DNA of 58,535 nt, counting the filler, from Trichosphaerium sp. ATCC 40318 (taxonomy: Eukaryota; Protista; Tubulinea), in the NCBI GenBank assembly GCA_038496445.1. It is 2 parts of 2 records of this genome, joined end to end, with 100 filler letters (N's around TTAATTAATTAA, not from the genome) between each part and the next. Parts side by side here need not be neighbours in the genome. Positions count along the whole stretch, not along the records: positions 28,908 to 58,535 come from JALMLS010000394.1; 1 more part is not named here. One strand, given 5' to 3'. The notes under the pieces are model-generated. The model was given only the letters and a program-made list of their open reading frames with translations, made no database searches and was not told the origin of the DNA. The translations under genes were made by a program, and so were the position numbers. Below, piece after piece: positions 38,963 to 51,826 of this stretch (positions within the stretch are counted from its first letter, which is position 1; every line of letters starts with the position of its first letter).

Positions 38963-39637
38963 CTACAACCCAAATTGGCTGCACTTATTGAATTCTATAA
39001 AATCTAGTGTAAACGAGTCAAATTGGTACCACTCATCATAACCAAATGAGCCACCATAAATATTAAACACTGCAGAAACCTTTTCAAAAGTAACTTGCTC
39101 TTTGGTCCAATCTATTTCATAGTGAAATGGCCCAGCTAGAGTAGCATCTACTCTTTTAATTTGGTATCCTTGACGTTTATTAGCAGCCATCTCAAGTAGC
39201 CTGGTTCTGAAATGAACAAACAGTGCAGGACCAATACGACATGCCATTGACAACTTTCGAATGTCCTTCGCTTCTGGAACCATGTGTCTTTCTTTCCTGC
39301 TTGAGCTGTAAAATTGGGTAAGTTTGAAGGTTATTTTTCGCGTTTTACGAGGGTAAGAGACTTCAATAAATCGCCTACGGGGTTCTAGACGTTTGTTGAG
39401 GGTATCAGAGTCAATATTGAGAGCAATTGCTAGCTGTGTTTTCCAAAAATCATGAGATAGATCGCTGAAGCGTAAAATATGAGAGAAGTACGTGTTTGAT
39501 GCGCGTAAAGCACAAAATGAATCTATAGATAAATAATCAACGATATTTAGCCACATTTCGTTTGGGAGAATCGGATCATAGTCTACAACACGGCTGTCTT
39601 GGTGACAATCACTTTCTTTGGAACCAAAGTTTCCCAT
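38963..39637 (-). CDS. F-box protein with N-myristoylation-like start
   Basis: MGNFGSK start and F-box ILPNEMWLNIVDYLSIDSFCALRASN. It may continue into exons near 38350-38900. Confidence 0.7.
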   Translation of the reverse strand: MGNFGSKESDCHQDSRVVDYDPILPNEMWLNIVDYLSIDSFCALRASNTYFSHILRFSDLSHDFWKTQLAIALNIDSDTLNKRLEPRRRFIEVSYPRKTRKITFKLTQFYSSSRKERHMVPEAKDIRKLSMACRIGPALFVHFRTRLLEMAANKRQGYQIKRVDATLAGPFHYEIDWTKEQVTFEKVSAVFNIYGGSFGYDEWYQFDSFTLDFIEFNKCSQFGL

Positions 39638-39761
39638 GGATATTGTGAGCTAAAAATAAGCTGTAAGTAAGTTGTTGTTTTGTTAAGGCAGATATTAGAC
39701 AAAGCGTCCAAAGTCGCATTCTCCCACTAAGGGATTGTTATATGCTGCCGTTGTAATGAAG

Positions 39762-42700
39762 TTATTTACCTCTATCAACTGGAAAGGCGTGAACTATCGG
39801 TATTTTGCTGTATCGGAGTTGCCATTTTATATAATCCGTGCTAACGTATTGGTTGAGGTGTTTTTTGATTTTTATTGTACGTTTACATCTGTTTCTGTAT
39901 TTTTGATATAGAAGTCTGACATACATTGTATTGAGTTTGTTGGCTAGTTTCTCAGCTCTGTTGATCTTGATACCATACGTTACTGCTATATTATTTATAA
40001 ATTTTTTTGTTACGTATCCCTGTGCTCCTCTAAACAAATCTGGATCACCTGCTTCGTTAATATTCTGAAATATCCATTTCACCTTGAACGTGTTACTCTT
40101 ATCTGGTATGTTTGCTCCTAATTTAGCTATTTCTATACGAACATCTGAGGGGTCATTTTTACGGAACCATTTGCATTTAGTGAAAGAGTTATCCGGGCTA
40201 GCAAGGCTGTTGTACAGTTGTTTTTTGTTTATAGTTTTTTTCTTGTTTAAATATTCATCCGTGATTCTGCACGCGTGGTGGTTAATTTTTTCAAAAAAGT
40301 GTTTAGAGTGACAGAGGACGAAATGTACGAAGTCTTCGTCAATATTTTTATTATTTCTACTGCTACATATAGAGCAGTTTGGCGTGGGGTACATCGTTAG
40401 GTATCTGGTTTTTGCAACAGGGAATGTTACGTTTTTGCCTTTTTTGAACATAAATTTATTTAATGGGAGACCATTACTTCTTACTTTGAGTAACCATGCT
40501 GAAATCGTTTTGTCCAGGTGTATTTTGTGTTCGATGTTACTCGCTTTAAAGTTGATATTTTTTCTTGTTCTACAATGTTTGTTAGCGTTTGCCTCTAGGT
40601 TGTCGAAATAGAATTCCGTAAATTTTTGGTTCACGTAGTCTCTAAATTTTATGTCTAAGATTGATTTACGTTTTGTAATATTCCAATCAGGTCTGCCTTT
40701 AGGGATACCCTTCATTTTTTCTTTACTCCTATTTGAGTTTGCTAATTTGTCTGCTTCGTTATTCATGATAACGAGGCATTTTGTTTTATCTTTACCGTAC
40801 GTTAAATCGAGTAACATCAATTGTTTTTTAACTTTCTTTTTTTCTTTCTTTTTTGCGTCTTCCATGGTATGGCTAGGTATCCATATAAATTTCGTCGGGT
40901 ATTTGCGTTTGTTTATTTCTTCGATTATTCTTATAATTGTGTGATAATGTGGTGTATTTCTTCTTTTTTTGTTACTCCACGAGGTCCAATTTGTTATAGA
41001 GTCCATGGCAGAGGTGCAATCGCATGCTATTAGTATTTTCGTTTCTAGGGGAGATATTTTTAGTGCAACCTCAATGGCTTCCAATTCTGCATTAATAGAA
41101 GTTTTATTAAACAGTACCGGGAGACCGATATTAATGTTATTTGGGGCGTAAACGCCTATACCAGCTTCATTATCTGTACTGACTGATCCGTCTGTAGCTA
41201 TGACAATATGCTCTTTTATGATTAGCGCGTTTTTTGTAAATTCTTTTACTTTTCTTCTGTGGATATTCCTATTTAATTTATTAACTTCACATGTATATGA
41301 TAATTTTAATTTTGCGTTTTTTAGGAGTTCTGATGCTATTGTGACTGAGTCTTTAATCGTACTTAGATCCAAGTATTTGTCTTGGCTTAATGAAAGATGA
41401 AACGAAGGGGAGGTGTGGCATCTTTTTTCTGTAATCCGTCTTAAATATTTGTTACTCGAGTTAAGGCAATTATATACGATGTTCTTTACATACCCTATCG
41501 TCTGGTTTATAAATAGTGACTTCAGGTTTGCTCCCGTTAGTTTTATAAAGAGTCTTTCGTTTAATAGGTTGTGTCTGAGTTTAGCTGCTCCTTTTATTGT
41601 ACATGATGCGTTTTTGTCCATTTCTTCAAGAGCATTTACTCCGAGGAAAACAGACGTACTTACAAAATCTACAGCAGGGTTAATTACCGTGTTTATGATT
41701 TTAACTTTATTATTAACTGATAGTTTCTTAGTACCTAGAAGTTTAAGTCTTTCTCTATGGACAGCCTTCGTCTTATTAATTTGTTTCGTGAAATCTAGGT
41801 TTAGGTTCGTTAGGATACCAAGGTCTTTATAGTTTTTATTTTCGTCTAGGATTGGGATTATTTTATTTCTCCATCTTAGGTTTGGAATTTTATTCTTATC
41901 AACGTACTTATTGTGCGTGAGAGATGATTTATCACAGTTAATTTCCATTCCGAAGAAGTAACACCATTTAGAGAGGATTGCAAACATTTCTTCTAGTTCT
42001 TCTTCTGATTCTGCCATTATTTTAAGATCGTCTGCATACGCAATAACCGCTATAATTATGTCAGACCATTTGTAACCTAGTTTTGATTGTTCTAACTCTT
42101 TTAGGAGGATATTAATAAACAGCGAAAAAAGGATAGGGCTTATTACGTCACCTTGTCTTACTCCTTTATTAATTGGGAATGCCTTTTTACCAACCGGTAT
42201 TTCGAGGGTTGTTTTTAAATCTTCTAGTAAAGACATTATTATGTTACACCACTCCGATGAAAGACCTTGTATTTTTAGCGCTGCTAGTAGCGCCCAAAAT
42301 TGAACTGAATCGTATGCTTTTTTGAAATCTATGTAAAGTACGTACAGCGGTTTTTGTTTTTGATTTGCGTCTTCTATAACTTGGTGGTACAATTTATGTG
42401 CCATATGTATTGATCTATTATTATAGAAACCGAATTGTAGATCGGAGATGGTTTTATTTTCCCTTAGGATTTTTGTTAGTCGTCTAGTAATTATCGTGCT
42501 ATATATTTTGTACATTGAGTTCAATAGACAAATTGGTCTGTATTGAGAGACGTCATTTTTCTTTCTTTTATTCTTGGCTAGGAGGATCATATTAGATTTT
42601 TTCCACTCACTCGGAAGTCTTTTTGTTTTAAGACATACGTTACATACCGTTTTTATAGCATTGATAACTTCTGGGGATAGTACTTTGTATATTTCCATTC

Positions 42701-45700
42701 CAATTCCTGTTGTCCCAGGTGCTTTAAATGATTTCATTAGATTGATGACATGAGTTATCTCCTCTGTTGTAATCTCTTCAATGTCTTGATTAACTATCAG
42801 AGGGAATTTCGCTACAAAGGATTCCGGTTTGAGTAGATTCGGTATAGGACATTTCTTGCCTTGCGGTTTAGATGGGTGGGCGAATTCGCTATTAAACAAT
42901 CCCGACCAAAAGGAGACAAACTCTTCAAGGATGGTATCGTTGCTGTATAGTATTGTAGGGATTCCATTTATGTTTTTTATGACGCTGTTGGTAAAGTCGT
43001 TGTTAGTGGTTTCGTTGAATCTTTGGAGATATTTAAATTTTTTGTATACCGTTTTATTGGATAGTTCTGTTAGCTCGTCAATTGATCTATCGATACATAT
43101 GTTTTCTAGGTTGTTGTGGAGGCCTTTGACCCATCTATTAATGGAGCTTGTGTTGTCTTTAATTAGTCTATTGATTTCTTCTTTGTTATTGTTAAGAAGG
43201 GGAAGAGTGTGAAGTTTCTTCTCGTTTGCTTCTTTTATCCATCCGTTAATTTTTTTGATGTTCTTATTGATGGTTGTTTGTTTAAAGTTTCTTATTATTT
43301 GACGACCTATTTTTCGATAAGTATTTTTTAGGCTGGTTAGTCTTTTATGTTCTGAGTGTTCAATAAAAGGTTTACGTTTTGTCTTACCATTTTTTATTCC
43401 TAGCTCTTTTGCCGAGAACTTAAAGAGTTCCTTCGTGAAGTTGTCTACGAATCTATCAACATAGATATCTGCAAGGAATTCGGTTTCATTTGCTTTGTCT
43501 AAGAGGTTACACGCGTACTCTGAAAGGGAGAAAGACGGGATCACGCTTATGCGTTTTGGATTTCTCATACGTAGCTTTGTTTTCATTATTCTGTTTCTGG
43601 TATCCTTTTCTATACCATCGAGTGTGAATTTGAATTCAAGAATAATTGGTTTGTGATCCAATGAGTGTTCGTCTGAAATTGTGGTTAGTGATTTTGCTTT
43701 GTTAGGTTTTGTCATAAGTGCAAAGTCAATGCGTTCATACAGTAATCCTTTTCCATATTCTTTGATCGTGGTTTTCATTTGGAACGTAAAACTGCTTGGA
43801 CTGTTTTTTAACATTTCTATAGGGTCAGTTAGGCCATTATTCATTTTAAAAATATTCATGATGTTTTCGTACTTAGTTTCAATTTCAATTAGCTCGCTGT
43901 TAATCCATAAGTTCTTGTCATTGTCAAATTGAGCCATATTCCAGTCGCCAATTAGAATCACATTGTTGATATTAACATTCTTGGATTGGAGTTTCTTTAA
44001 GAATGTAGTTATTATGTCTAGTTGTTCTATCTTATTTTGTATCCTATACGCGCTTAGATATATGTTGAAAATTAATGTTTCTTTACCTTTACTATCACTT
44101 ATTGTTAACGCTTGGAAGAAATTATTAGGTGATTCTATCATTTTTACTCGAGACCTGATTTCGTCTCGCAACAGAATTATCGTGCCTCCTTTTGCTCTTT
44201 TGCTGGTGCGAAGTTTATTCTTTTCAAGGTTTTTCCTCTCGTCTGACCATGCTGAATCGTCTATTAATTTTGTGTTTTCCTTCATAAAAGCATCGTTGAT
44301 TTCTAGGTTATTAGGGACATTAGCGAAACATTTGTAATTTGGAAGATTTTTTAAAACAGCGTTTTTAAAATTCGTACTATTTATCTGTTCGATTGATCTG
44401 TGTACTTCTTGTATGCATATAATGTCTAACTTGTATTTATTAGCAAGAATGGATACGTTGTGTAATTTTTTTTCTATTCTACCTTTAATGTTCCATGACG
44501 CTAAGCTGAGCGAAGATTTTGACGATGTTGGTGTTTCTGTGCCTCCTCCTCCTTTTAGTTTAAAATTAATTTGTATATTATTATTTATAAGGTCTAAAAC
44601 ACGCGACTTACCATATATGTGTTTAGAACAAGACATTATGAAGGTGTAATCCCAAATTTTTGGCCAAACGTTATATTTGTAAACGAAAAGAGAGAGAAGG
44701 TTGTTAATGATGATGTTGTGATGAATGGTGATATATTTAGGCTTAAAAAAGTTGATTAGTATTGTTTTTGGTTTACTTAACTTGAATGCTTTTTTAGAGA
44801 AAAACCCATGTTTATTACTGGAGCACATAACATGTAAGAGATGGTGCCTTTTATGTAACTCTAAGATTGGACTATTTTTAAGGAACTTGATGGTGGCGAA
44901 TTTAGAAACGGCTTCTGTTGAAACACATGATCTTTTCTTCATTGTTGATCTCGAGGGTGATTCCATGGCCGTATCTTGATAAGACTTTTTCTTTCGCAGT
45001 TGATGAACCGAAACCGACGATATAGTGGCTAGTTCTAGCACCTTTCGTTGTACAGTCAAGGAAGACGAAGTGCGGGTAGATCTATTGAGTAGTAAGTAAA
45101 TTTTATTTTTAGAGCAAGAAAAATTTACCTCCTTCTTAGCTAGGGCAATGATAACTTCCGTTGGGGTGCCTGACCATGATTTACCAAGGAGTAGGGTGGT
45201 ACTTTTCTCGAAACGCATTCTACAAGGGACATATCTAGTGAAACCATTTTCTTCGGCGTACTTAACATGGTATCCTGCTCTGTTAAGAATAGTAATCACC
45301 ATTGACTTGTTTTGTTCTAAGGCGAGGGTGATATCCGCGTAGTAAGATATTTTCGTTTGGCCGTGTCTGGTGAATGTTGATGAGTCCAGGGTAATCTCTG
45401 GTGCATGGGCATTCTTCTTCCAGAAGGAGAGGATTTCTTCTACATCAAAGGGTCTTTCCTCGCTCCACAATGTAACGGTTCTTCCAATAAGAAAGTTATC
45501 GATATAACGTAAGAAGTTTTTCAATAATTTCGTTTTGTCAAAGTCGAAAAAGTTTAACGCGCTTGTAGGGACTAATGGAAGTTTTCTAAGGACGTCACGG
45601 AGGTATTTCGCTTCGTTAGCATATTCTTCGTTGATAATCTCAGCCGCTCTAAGTCCAAAGATAAAAGCAGTATGACCACGAATCAACGGAATAGTAGCAT

Positions 45701-48700
45701 AACCAAGTGTGCCTGTGTGATTAAAATCAGTATAAGGAATATGATTAAATATGAGCGAACGAAGAGAAGAAATGATAAAATAAATTTTATTTACTATGTT
45801 ACTAAAAATATAATATTTGGTAAAAGGATGAGAGAGGGAAAAGAGGTTTTCTTGTAAGGAAAAGAAGGTCACATAAATTGGCGGCGTACCGTTAATGAGC
45901 CATTTCTTGAATTTGGGGTCCATTTTCATTAGCTTATCAAGCTTGGTGTTGGGAGGGGTAGGAAGAGAGGGAATGAGGATAGTGAAGGCTGCTGAAGGGT
46001 GGATTAATTCGGTCCATTCTTCAAGTCTACCAAAGTTTGCTGAGAGATCTATCTTATTTGGATCGATAGGTTCATCGTCAAATATACTGAGGTTGTTGTT
46101 CTGAAGTAGTGTGAGTAATTTTATAAGTAGAGGACGGTATTTAAAAAGGGAAGAAAAAAGGGCGTTGTGTACTTGGTCGTTCTTGTGACTATTGTTAACG
46201 AAACTAAGAAGAAATGCAATGTTTTCTTTTTCTTCGCGTTTAATAATTTCATCCATAACCTGCTTTTCAATGCTACGTTTCATAGGACTATCCAAAATTT
46301 TAGAGAGTTTAGCCATAGCTTCTTCTCTCGTAAGATTATCGAATTCCTTGAGGCAGTTGGTGTTTGAGGACATGTTGTTAGTGTTGTGTGTGCTCGGTGA
46401 AAAGAACGATATCAGAATAAAATTACTTTTATGAAATTTATTTTTTGTTTTTTGGTTATTGTGAAGTTTTGGTTTGGTAAAGACACCGTTAGTTGGTGAT
46501 TGTGTTCTATTGTTGGTTAAGGGTCTCGGTATATCCTTTCCGGGTTTATGCTTTGTCTTTGTTTTTTTGGTCGCACTAACTTGTTTAATAATATTACTTT
46601 GGAGTTTGAGTTCTAGTTCGTATAAAGTAAGGTTCGCGTTCTCAAAGTATGCTCTAATTTGAAGGAGGAAGATCCTGCCTAGTTGTTTCGTTTTGAAAAC
46701 TATTATCTTAGTGATTTCGACACAGTTTTTTGACAACGCTTTATTTGATAGTTTTTTCTTGTTTACTCTATTGAGAAGGTAAAAAACTAGAGCGCTTTGG
46801 GTTATGATCATGTTTATTGAAACGAGGCAACTTTTTAGGTTGCAGTTGTTTCTTTTAGGTTTCACAATTTTTATGAAGTAATTTTTTACTATTTTTATAT
46901 CTCTTATCTTCGCGTTTTCCAGGGCTGAAACTCAACTAGGCATTGCCTTAAAAAATGATGCATATTCCTAACATTTGGCATTAAATGGCAAAATCAAGGC
47001 ATTTGCATTTGGCAATGCCCAATAAAATAAGGCATTTTTACAAAAAAGCAATGCCTTCATCAAAAAGGCATTAATACCAGGCATTTTTGGGCATCTTTTG
47101 GCATTGCATGAAATCAGGTAATGCCTTGTATTGCATTTTTTGGCATTGCATAAAATCAAGTAATGCCCTGTATTGCAAGTACTTTATGCCTTTATTATGC
47201 CTTATTTTTTTAAGCAATATATGCCTTGTATTTTAATTCATATATAAGGCATTGCCTATACTATATCATAGGACTGATCACATTAAGGAAGTGGTTTAAG
47301 GTAAGTAACAGTCAAACAACTTTTACACTTTTTTTTTCACATCACCTACTGACGTTTTATATAGATAGGCACCTAGCGCTCTTAGTAATTCATGAAATTA
47401 GACGAAACCACCGCCAAACGAACCGCAGCACCCTATTTCACCTACAACAGTAGTAGGAGTGAACTCCGCGATATTTCCAGGACCGCGGAACTCTAACACT
47501 ACAAGGTAAGTTTTTTTTTTTTTCTACACCATCTCATATTTTCTTTAAGGTTTTTTCAAATGTGGACTTAGGAGTTTTGTGTATTGTATGTGTACTGTAT
47601 TATAAAATAAATAGTTGTGTTATTACCTGAAAATGCCCTGGTTTATTAGGCACTGTAGACTATGATAATGCTTACTTTTTGCCTTCAAAATAAGGCATTG
47701 ATGCATGAGTTCAGTAGTAAAATAGAAATGGGAATTTTTAAGTAATCCACCCTGTTTTCCTATGGGAAAAGTAAACGGAAAAACTCTTCCTTAATTCCCA
47801 TTGAATTTATATGAAATTCCGTAAGTATTACTCATAGAATTCTTAGAATATTACTTTTGGAATTGCGTATGTATTTTATATAGAATTCTCTATGTATTCT
47901 TTATAGCATTTCTTAATGTATTTTTTGTAGATTTCAATAAAAAATACTTTATAAATTACACAAAATATTATTTAATACTTTGGTTCAGATTTAATGCAAA
48001 GTCATTTTATTTATTGATCATTACAAAATACAAACATCCTAAATAATACGTACAAGTTAAATACATCGTGTTTTCATAAATGAAAGAAGTAATTTGATCA
48101 CATTTGGTTTTGAGAGCCTGAACAATAATTAATGCGTTTGTAAATGCTAAATTAAGAACGCGTAGGGTTTTTTGATAAATTAAGTGGAAATAAGCTTTAA
48201 AAACAACGTACTTGGAGTTAATGCTTTAAATACATTCTTTAATGGTGTAATAAGGCTGTTGCAATGCTTTAATCATCCTAAAACAGATAAGTAAGAGATA
48301 TTTATGTTTAAGTGATTTTCCAAACCACCTAAAACGCGTTCTCCGTTACTTTTTGGATTAACGCACTTTAACCTGTACCATTGGTTTTTTCACCTTTAAT
48401 AATAGCATGTGGATATTGTTCGCTAGAAAAACCTATGTACCTAAGGTGTTGATGGTTTTTTGCAAATATAAAACTAAACCCTAACCCTAACTTAATTTGT
48501 ACTTTCATAAACCTCAACCCTAGCCCTAACCCTAACCCTAACTAAATTAGTACATTATTTGGTGGATTTTGTACAATAATTCTGAAAATTCCGTATTTAA
48601 GGGAATATTATGGTAATCCTATCAAAAATCCTGCCATAAAAAAAAATAAAAATAAGAATTCTTCACAAATTACCTTAAAAATCCCTAAAACAAAGGAATT

Positions 48701-49485
48701 TAGTGGGATTTATATCCAAAATCCCGTTTTCATTTTACCACTGTTATGCCCTAATTTGAAGGCATAATTCCTTAAAATATGCAAGCAAAACCATTGCAAT
48801 CTTGTGTACCAAATGCAAGCATTTTTCATCAAATATAAGGCATTTTTGGAGCAAAAAATAAGGCATTGCCCTGTATTTGCCTTTTTGAATGAGGCAAAAA
48901 CTAGGCATTTTTGTAAAAAATAAGGCATTATTTGATGAAAATGCCTAAGCATTGTCCAAAAATGCCTTGTTGAGTTTCAGCCCTGTCCCTATCGTTGAAT
49001 GTTGTTATATCATTAGGTTTCCAATCGTATGTGATGATCTTGTTGTTTTGGTAGAGAGACGAGTTTGACGCATATTGTGCTGTTAGACTCTTATTATGTT
49101 CGTGACAGAGTTTTGTGTAATTTGTTAAACTTTTTTTAAATACCGGAAGAAATGATTGGTATTTTTTGAAGTCAGGAGATTGTTTTACTGTGTTCATTGA
49201 TGTGATGAAATTGAAGATAACGAAGTATTTCCATAGTGATCTCAATAGTTTTCTGATAATTTTTTTGTATTTGACTCTCGATTTTTTGGGAGAAGTTCGA
49301 ACTGACTTCCTCGCTACACTGAGTCTGAACGCTCTTGGTGTATTTGCACGATTTACCCTTATTTTTTTTGTTTTTTGTTTTTGTGTTAGGGGAGCTTGCT
49401 CCCCAACCGGCACGTTAGCCGACGGTTGCAAATCATTTTGGCCATCGACCAACGTACCGGATCTTTTCGACGTTGTCGATGGCAT
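39762..49485 (-). CDS. Retrotransposon polyprotein, 2551 aa after removing the insertion: N-terminal region, ubiquitin-like domain, APE endonuclease, RT, RNase H, C-terminal Cys/His motif
   Basis: APE: SWNIKG, IQEVH, GDWN, RIDF, DHKPI. RT: YRPICLL, DFKKAYDSV, GVRQGDVISP, YADD. RNase H: ATDGS, AELEAI, CDC, WIPSH, NNEADKLA. Deleting 46920-48985 plus TC joins TTFNDR-ENAKIRD...KIVKPKR in frame. Confidence 0.93.
46920..48985. mobile_element. CAGGG-family element, diverged subfamily, 2-bp TSD TC, inserted in the LINE ORF
   Basis: TIR CAGGGCTGAAACTCAAC...GTTGAGTTTCAGCCCTG with AGGCAT subterminal repeats. The internal segment is homologous to copies 1 and 2. Confidence 0.93.
47712..48743. mobile_element. 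1032-bp CAGT...ACTG TIR element with 2-bp TSD TT, nested in the CAGGG element; contains CCCTAA repeats
   Basis: CAGTAGTAAAATAGAAATGGGAATTTT versus reverse-complemented right end CAGTGGTAAAATGAAAACGGGATTTT. TT on both flanks. (CCCTAA)n at 48477-48542. Confidence 0.85.
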
Positions 49486-49551
49486 AGGACTTTATTTACT
49501 TTACGTCGTTGCCCAGGGTGAACTGCGTGGAAGTCGCCGGTGTGTCACCCC
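49406..49551 (-). ncRNA. HDV-like (nested double pseudoknot) self-cleaving ribozyme at the retrotransposon 5' end
   Basis: P1 GGGGUGA/UCACCCU (G1-U wobble); P3 ACU/AGU; L3 UCCACGC; P1.1 CC/GG; P4 base CGACG/CGUCG; J4/2 GGCUAA (catalytic C at 49418); P2 ACCGGCG/UGCCGGU. Confidence 0.85.
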
Positions 49552-49814
49552 AAAAAAAAAAAAAAAAAAAAAAAAAAAATAAGCTGTCTAGACTAAAATT
49601 GACTTAAATACATCTCCTCAGTCGCTTTCCTACGTATAATACAACAGGTTGCTTACAAATTTTGAGGTGAATAAAAGGTTGCAAAGAACACATGCTTCAC
49701 GCAACAATATATTGAACACGTGTCATGCTATCGATTATGTATGTGTAACATGTTAGAAGTCAATTGAATTATATTCACCTACAACCCAAATTGCTGAGTT
49801 GACTTCTTTTTGTT

Positions 49815-51826
49815 TTACACGACAAGAGTTGTTGCAATAAGTGCCTGAAGTGCTAAATATTTACTCTTATACTTGAGACACTGAGGTCGAGGACCATGAT
49901 GGTTGACTCCCTTTTGTGATCGATAACGTTAGAGATTACTTTATTAGACATACTACTTACCTTTAAATAAACAACTTTCGCATTGGGTACAATAGCGTCT
50001 TTACAAAGAACTTGAGAGCAAATGTAAGGGATAACGATTTCTAGAATCACGTGGTCAAGTACCTAATCCATCGTTCTCTTGTTTGTATCTATTCCTTAAG
50101 TACTTGTAAGAGGAACTAAATTGCTTGTCTGGGCATCCAGCGGCTGTTGTTACAAAAGACAAAACTGGCACCTTTATAGCAGCATTAGAGTGTTGATTAA
50201 AATACAAACGTACATTGTCAGGGAATGGATGTTCTTTAATAAATAGTTTTCTAAAGAAATATTTAGCAGCCGTCTCTGTGTTCTGTTATTTACGTACCTG
50301 TCCGTGATGGATAACTGTTTCATAGCAATTGGATCACATTTCATCACTCTCTTTAGCATAACCTATAGACTAATGGGATTCTAGAATAGTGCTCAGTTAC
50401 ATACATTTACTATTGCTGTTGATGCTCTTCTTTTGTGTACTGATTCTGCCTTTATTTCATTAAATGTTAGTATTAGAACAAGTACAGAAACGTACCATAT
50501 GAGAGCCATGATAAGGCGTTGATAACGTTATAACACCTCTTATTAATTTGTGTATATCAGGAAATAACGCAACAGCAGCAGTAATGTCAATACCACCTGA
50601 AGTTTCGTTTAGGTTTAAAATTAACAAAAAAAGGAGTACCTTTGCTGTGTCCAACAAGGAGCGTCTTCTTTTGTTTCTCTTTAAACAAAGATTTAATAAA
50701 CGTAGCAATAATAGCTGCGTTAACTTCTACTTGTCCATCTGGAAGTACATCTATGATACACGCATGTGGACATCCGTCTTTCATTAATTGTTCCATTCGT
50801 TTTAATGTATTCTAACTCGAATGTTAGTTCTCGTTCTCCGAAGCTATTTGAACAGTTACATTCTTATTTCCAGCTCCTGGTAATTTTCCACTGAATAAAC
50901 CTGGAACATAGCATATTATAGTATCAGATACACCTTCAATACTTCGAAAAAGATTATTCTCTTCGTCTTTCTCAAAAAGATTCAAATACTCTTCGAAGAT
51001 AACTGTCATATCATTATCAAACGCTAACTCTATTGTTTTTGGCTCAGAAGAGAATACTATATTGAAAAAAGCAATATTAAGTTTAACCCACGAGTGAAGT
51101 ACACGTACATAGTTTGTTTCCGCTTGCATTGTAAGAGTCTGTTTCAAAAGTGAAGCTCAATAACACTTGTATCGATACTTGCTTCCCAAAGTCTCCGCAA
51201 ATTGTGAAAGGAAACCATACTTGTTCTTTTTCAATCATCTACAAATACGCACTGTGAGAGACTCAATTTTTTGAAGAGAGCAAAAAAAAAAACTGGTTCT
51301 GTGAATACAGCGCAATGTGTCAAGTGTCACCTTGCAATCCTCAACTGAAATGATCATTTTTCCAACATGTAAAGCCTCTGTTGCATCAAACAATAGAATA
51401 TATAGGTCTAGCTGTAAACTGTCATGATCGTCATACATCTGAAATTGATGAACAGAATTCCATCTAATACACGTGAATATCAGTGCGAAAAAAGTTTTCG
51501 GTACATTGGGACTTTTGTGGGTTTGGAAATGTGTGTAGATAATTGTTTGCGCCCTGTTTTGGTGGTATATGCCAATTCTATGTATGTTTGAGGTAGTTCT
51601 ACGTATATTATTAGCGTTCATTAAAATACCATCATATTACGTCATAAATCGTATTAGAGGTCATAGTACGCTTACTTTTGTTCTTTGTGTGATTAAAAAG
51701 CTCGTCAGTTAGTTTATTCGTCCGAAGCACTTGCATTTAGACGTGAGAAGCTGAAGTCATTACTTACGTACCTTTGAGAGATACTCTAGTGCTTTTTCGT
51801 TCTTTCTCTGTAATAGAATCATCCAT
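49815..51826 (-). CDS. Alpha/beta-hydrolase (lipase-like, GHSKG), possibly with N-terminal C2-like region (multi-exon)
   Basis: YVPGLF (oxyanion region), LLVGHSKG|GID (nucleophile elbow), LSTPYHGS, NDGL|V and NH. Confidence 0.8.

Follow-up and report, generated by a model that had tools for sequence, protein, structure and literature searches.

Long interspersed nuclear elements (LINEs) with an APE-type endonuclease have been described either with two open reading frames (ORFs), whose products are not processed, or with a single ORF, in which case 2A recoding is used (PMC3894237). A different arrangement, in which the two halves of a single-ORF polyprotein would be parted by proteolysis at a short Gly-Gly motif, is considered here for a LINE of Trichosphaerium sp. 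ATCC 40318 (GenBank assembly GCA_038496445.1). The stretch of DNA that was analysed, termed the window, is 58,535 nucleotides long and consists of two parts of two records joined by 100 filler letters. The element lies within positions 28,908 to 58,535, which come from JALMLS010000394.1.

Several systems come close to this arrangement. The 2A/StopGo peptides are found in single-ORF APE-type retrotransposons lacking long terminal repeats (non-LTR retrotransposons) (PMC3708506, PMC3894237). Ulp1-like protease domains (family C48, clan CE) are known in the non-LTR retrotransposons NeSL-1 and Utopia-1_TSP, and the available portion of that source names no cleavage motif for these proteases (PMC4640811). 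In cytopathogenic pestiviruses, ubiquitin inserts are cut by host ubiquitin hydrolases (PMC8310069). Full-text searches, which covered part of the journals, retrieved no account of a LINE with a ubiquitin-like (Ubl) domain or a Gly-Gly junction. Enzymes of the Ulp1/SENP group and their viral clan-CE relatives cleave after Gly-Gly, and the viral sites are short: the adenovirus protease (adenain) recognises (M/I/L)XGG↓X, where the arrow marks the cut, and pS273R of African swine fever virus (ASFV) cuts polyprotein sites of the form GG↓X.

The Trichosphaerium element and the parts of its ORF are as follows.

39665–49574, minus strand: whole non-LTR retrotransposon, bracketed by a 13-bp target-site duplication
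48986–49485, minus strand: first part of the ORF, with its ATG at 49485, 166 codons, interrupted by a nested transposon
39762–46865, minus strand: rest of the ORF, uninterrupted, 2367 codons and a stop, with the ORF1-like part, the junction, APE, reverse transcriptase, RNase H and a C-terminal Cys/His motif
44547–44768, minus strand: 74-residue segment (ORF residues 700–773, from translation), rich in Ile, Asn and Lys, ending in LKGG, with no recognisable fold
44541–44558, minus strand: L-K-G-G-G-G motif (residues 770–775), candidate cleavage site or hinge
44511–44540, minus strand: Thr/Ser/Pro/Lys linker TETPTSSKSS (residues 776–785), between the motif and the APE domain
43890–44501, minus strand: APE-type endonuclease (residues 789–992), Pfam PF03372, E 1.9e-4
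41886–42563, minus strand: reverse transcriptase (residues 1435–1660), Pfam PF00078, E 2.8e-37
40866–41213, minus strand: RNase H (residues 1885–2000), Pfam PF00075, E 3.8e-10

The window element is a bounded LINE with a single ORF in which an APE endonuclease, a reverse transcriptase (RT) and an RNase H lie in one frame. Undisrupted, this ORF comprises 166 + 18 + 2367 = 2551 codons, as found by counting the frame across the nested insert and discounting one copy of a 2-bp "GA" as a duplication made by the insert. Both the 2551-residue ORF and its APE-RT-RNase H content had been proposed in an initial annotation of the window, and both are borne out here. The APE match scores 21.7 bits, slightly below the Pfam gathering score of 24.5, and the APE regions of two relatives (P0006 and L002) align with it, which backs the assignment.

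The same annotation had pointed to 74 residues ending in LKGG just before the APE domain, and the minus-strand translation of 44547–44768 reproduces them verbatim. LKGG sits at a domain border, 12 residues upstream of the start of the APE homology, and conforms to (M/I/L)-x-G-G↓x; alignable homology to relatives begins at residues 777–783 (777 for the sister element). The LKGG(GG) motif is non-random: Gly makes up 2.9% of the window protein and GG occurs just once elsewhere among the 2367 residues. No Met follows closely downstream of the motif, either in the window element or in the relative P0003 described below.

Relatives of the element were reached solely through the RT domain. In the RT tree, the window element falls in a nine-member clade (support 99/95) with P0001 as its sister (support 100/96), while P0003, P0005, P0006, P0012, P0002 and the pair P0004 and P0007, the latter from the amoebozoan Planoprotostelium, branch unresolved within the clade. 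P0003 (2589 aa) and P0006 (2370 aa) have a single ORF like the window element. It is P0003 (locus L001) that repeats the motif, in the sequence ...ITIHTTLKGGG at residues 727–739. When the window pre-APE region (790 aa) is compared with P0003 residues 1–1050, the top BLASTP pair is an alignment of 41 residues that ends in LKGGG (E 0.09), and LKGGG is the sole 5-mer common to the two regions. A composition-weighted rarity score as high as that of LKGGG arose in 14 of 3000 shuffles (~0.005), a figure that leaves the matching position at a module border uncounted. The GGG run by itself arises in 1.1% of shuffles of the window region and in 0.6% of those of the P0003 region; Gly makes up 2.2% of the P0003 protein, which has one further GG.

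The two elements are distant from one another, with RT domains that are 38% identical and APE domains that BLASTP does not align. Their codons for LKGGG differ as well (CTA AAA GGA GGA GGA in the window element, CTC AAA GGC GGA GGG in P0003), so the constraint appears to act on the protein. A signal at the nucleotide level was rejected on the same grounds. Both elements have the motif where the non-enzymatic and enzymatic halves of one long ORF meet, and in P0003 the GGG is followed by RSNKKVQNTKSS.

In P0003, a Peptidase_C48 match lies within ~45 residues after LKGGG (29.6 bits, with the cut-off at 20.7; E 7.7e-7). Yeast Ulp1 (1euv) can be aligned to this region at E 4.4e-7, and the region contains the Asp, Gln-Cys and His-Trp motifs; its order is circularly permuted compared to the yeast enzyme, with the Asp/Gln-Cys half (792–847) ahead of the His-Trp half (902–982). 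Because LKGGG stands at the same junction of this distant single-ORF element and a Ulp1/C48 domain comes after it, a Gly-Gly-directed cut between ORF1-like and ORF2-like products gains independent, if thin, support from two lineages. The initial annotation had proposed that host enzymes cut the polyprotein into these two products; the Gly-Gly-directed cut survives to this extent, while the part that invoked a Ubl domain and host deubiquitinases (DUBs) finds no support.

The reading favoured here, with a probability of about 0.4, is that LKGG(G) is a short-motif cleavage site for a clan-CE protease at the ORF1-like/ORF2-like junction, with the protease acting in cis in P0003 and in trans for the window element. 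The constrained part would be L-K-G-G-G at the end of the segment and not the body of the segment, and the site would have the form (M/I/L)-x-G-G↓x that clan-CE cysteine proteases (Ulp1/SENP, adenain and the ASFV protease) recognise. A cut at the motif would free the ORF1-like protein from the enzymatic APE-RT-RNaseH protein. In P0003, this cut would be made in cis by the element's own protease, which is encoded just after the motif. The window element encodes no protease, and it would therefore need one acting in trans, whether from a sibling element that carries a protease or from the host, in the form of a Ulp/SENP-type enzyme. That either motif is cut, and by which of these enzymes, is what we infer. 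The broader proposal that a lineage of APE-RT-RNaseH LINEs splits its polyprotein by Gly-Gly proteolysis, with P0003 carrying a permuted Ulp1-type protease and the window element borrowing one, is more doubtful.

This candidate site can be set beside the known systems. LKGG↓G fits the adenain consensus (M/I/L)XGG↓X, and it resembles the type-1 form in that L-K-G-G is followed by a small residue and no folded Ubl body is required. The adenovirus and ASFV sites lie in structural polyproteins of viruses, whereas the LINE site is known from sequence alone. The NeSL and Utopia elements share with the window element a non-LTR nature, one long ORF and a Ulp1-family protease (here in the relative P0003) that implies polyprotein processing, but they are restriction-like-endonuclease elements with an N-terminal protease, whereas the present lineage is of the APE-RT-RNaseH kind (PMC4640811). 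The protease of P0003 is not N-terminal but lies between the ORF1-like part and APE, and it is permuted as described above; the window element differs further in having no protease of its own. The pestivirus polyproteins offer a likeness in that a di-Gly C-terminus stands directly ahead of an enzymatic protein, but their inserts are bona fide host ubiquitin, whereas the LINE segment has no detectable similarity to ubiquitin. The 2A/StopGo peptides likewise allow separate products from the single frame of a single-ORF LINE; they act by co-translational recoding at NPGP, whereas the route proposed here is proteolysis. A 2A peptide (D(V/I)ExNPGP) was considered and rejected, as no NPG occurs in the window ORF, P0003 or P0006.

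What the 74 residues themselves represent bears on two rival explanations. According to the initial annotation, they form a β-grasp Ubl after whose C-terminal Gly-Gly host DUBs or Ubl proteases cut. The segment length and the C-terminal L-x-G-G tail (LKGG, residues 770–773) do match ubiquitin and its LRGG tail, Ubl precursors are processed by cellular members of the family to which the Ulp1-type protease of P0003 belongs, and the pestivirus precedent cited in that annotation is real (PMC8310069). However, hmmscan against Pfam at E ≤ 10 returned no family for either a 74-residue or a 138-residue version of the segment, and phmmer against all PDB chains at the same threshold returned three unrelated proteins and no ubiquitin, SUMO or NEDD8 chain. 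Structure prediction gave no confident fold in three attempts. AlphaFold2 modelled the segment as all helices from the single sequence (predicted local distance difference test, pLDDT, 37) and with a few strands from a two-sequence alignment (pLDDT 28), so that the two models disagree in secondary structure, and ESMFold2 reached a pLDDT of 33 on the equivalent stretch of P0003; all three models are unusable. Among language-model look-alikes in the ESM Atlas, the best for the segment scored 0.78 (MetW) and was taken as noise, and none for the ORF1-like part was usable. The segment contains 17.6% Ile, 12% Asn and 12% Lys, with no Glu, no Ala and little Asp, which is unlike known Ubls. With such a composition, hydrophobic matches to any β-rich protein come cheaply, and this includes the ubiquitin strands that had been aligned by eye, for which a resemblance beyond chance was not confirmed. 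The body of the segment is not detectably conserved in relatives either: only the last ~41 residues align weakly with P0003, at the E-value given above, and the sister locus L002 cannot be aligned upstream of residue 777. The β-grasp reading of the 74 residues is not supported. Host DUBs generally require a folded ubiquitin body, and since none is indicated in the segment, cleavage by a host DUB is unlikely; the Ubl model as a whole is highly improbable. It could also be that LKGG(G) arose independently in the two elements, or is an unconstrained leftover, and that the 74 residues are a translated AT-rich spacer needing only the absence of stops. Such an origin would suit the GC content at codon positions 1 and 2 (0.28 and 0.22, the lowest of the ORF), the extreme Ile/Asn/Lys bias, the lack of the motif in the sister element and a BLASTP E-value of just 0.09. 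It would also suit the failure to find homologues of the segment, for which a word-based search with residues 560–1010 gave no match and an exhaustive phmmer search of residues 501–1012 against 1.84 billion representative proteins gave none either. Chance is nevertheless improbable in view of the shuffle test, even with the matching position at the module border left out of account, and the other two frames of the segment contain 5 and 10 stops, which indicates that the coding frame has been kept open. The segment looks like a weakly constrained, AT-driven spacer that needs just to stay open, and it is best read as a fast-evolving stretch of biased composition at the junction of the ORF1-like and APE-RT-RNaseH halves.

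The remaining rival, a serious one like chance, is a flexible hinge, in which the Gly run and the Ser/Thr/Pro-rich stretch after it form an uncleaved linker between the ORF1-like and APE-RT-RNaseH modules and the fusion works whole. This is rather unlikely, since a hinge does not need the Leu-Lys ahead of the glycines, yet the two lineages, which have no other 5-mer in common, agree at all five residues, and since the P0003 motif directly precedes a protease of the family that cuts after Gly-Gly. A number of observations nevertheless weigh against cleavage at LKGG(G) by a clan-CE protease, and several of them are what a hinge would predict. In the window element GGGG is followed by TETPTSSKSS, and in P0003 GGG likewise runs into a stretch suited to a linker. 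No protease domain was found in the window element, either with Pfam or with phmmer using the P0003 protease. A review describes the products of APE-type elements with two ORFs as unprocessed (PMC3894237), and two members of the clade, P0004 and P0012, have two ORFs. The sister element P0001 (locus L002) has a different, Lys/Thr-rich linker, with KTKKITNY at the position of LKGGGG, although this copy is decayed by frameshifts and is soft evidence. P0006 has no LxGG at the junction of its single ORF. Just two independent lineages carry LKGGG, phmmer gives no link between their pre-GG segments, and the P0003 cluster contributes no diversity, its 17 members being near-identical. A scan with the RT alignment yielded 80 metagenome loci at 25–36% identity, few of which reach the junction; in none of them does the open frame ahead of the RT motif contain LxGG, and in only 10 of the 80 does this frame have at least 650 codons. 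A structure prediction that paired the protease region of P0003 with the pre-GG segment of the same protein counts slightly in favour of cleavage: it scored an ipSAE of 0.40 against 0.02 for the best control, with three runs agreeing in at least 27% of contacts and a partner pLDDT of at least 33. This is weak support, as in calibration only 5 of 78 solved complexes passed with scores of at most 0.60, as did all 4 passing mismatches, and without a good prior a pass at such a score is wrong in the majority of cases.

Some further observations concern the relatives. The P0003 cluster (P0121–P0134) is found as an element of ~8.4–8.9 kb making up whole contigs in JGI, NCBI, ENA and Logan, 99.6–100% identical over 450 aa, and P0003 has the look of an active LINE with a high copy number, from an organism often present in public samples. 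With residues 640–1010 of P0003 as the query, only its own cluster was recovered, and scans of genome contigs and of viral contigs returned no matches. The pre-GG segment of P0003 resembled aldehyde-dehydrogenase fragments in the ESM Atlas (0.92), a match taken as spurious on account of its low shared-feature count. P0006 shows LRGG at its called start (residues 1–7, N-terminus MNFLRGGA), where the gene call may have been extended spuriously in the 5′ direction. In P0004 (L003, nucleotides ~1531–1545), the ORF2 frame reads WIIVGG↓SELS right after the ORF1 stop and ahead of the ORF2 ATG; only frameshifting would bring this sequence into a protein, and it is probably a coincidence.

The bounds of the window element and the insert within its ORF are given by three further features.

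39652–39664, minus strand: target-site duplication, 3′ copy
49575–49587, minus strand: target-site duplication, 5′ copy, with ~23 further T following inside the element
46920–48985, no strand assigned: non-autonomous inverted-repeat transposon of 2066 bp with terminal inverted repeats, nested in the ORF

The exact 13-bp direct repeat ACAGCTTATTTTT occurs in two copies in the window, where none is expected, and since these are its only copies they bracket the element at 39665–49574 as a target-site duplication. The LINE is ~9.9 kb long with the nested insert and ~7.8 kb without it. On the element strand, the extra T (49552–49574) lie between the 5′ copy and the start of the 5′ untranslated region, GGGGTGACAC, and the 3′ end (39665 onward) is without poly(A) or another simple repeat. 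The nested transposon had been recognised in the initial annotation, and its ends are indeed 25-nt inverted repeats (46920–46944 and 48961–48985) that are identical at 24 of 25 positions and begin with CAGGGCTGAAACTCAAC. It contains many subterminal repeats of the AAGGCATT type and telomere-like CCCTAA runs at ~48477–48542. Its flanks have just the 2-bp "GA" in common, which is unusual as a target-site duplication. Rfam gave no match in the piece of DNA that was examined. Flanking ORFs at 38963–39637 and 50824–51147 (both minus strand) have weak, sub-threshold Pfam matches to F-box (E 0.005) and to DUF632, a plant family (E 0.002).

Should the motif be no more than a hinge, the window element is a single-ORF LINE of the ordinary kind that inserted recently. 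If LKGG(G) is cleaved as proposed, Gly-Gly proteolysis would be a third route to an ORF1p:ORF2p pair, beside two unprocessed ORFs and 2A recoding, with a protease that is encoded by the element in one member and external in another. Among LINEs, this would amount to an arrangement of the "parasite of a parasite" kind that depends on a protease, and it would tie LINE biology to the Ubl-protease systems of adenoviruses, ASFV and Polinton-like elements. A change of GG to AA would then be a simple handle on how stoichiometry is set in single-ORF LINEs.

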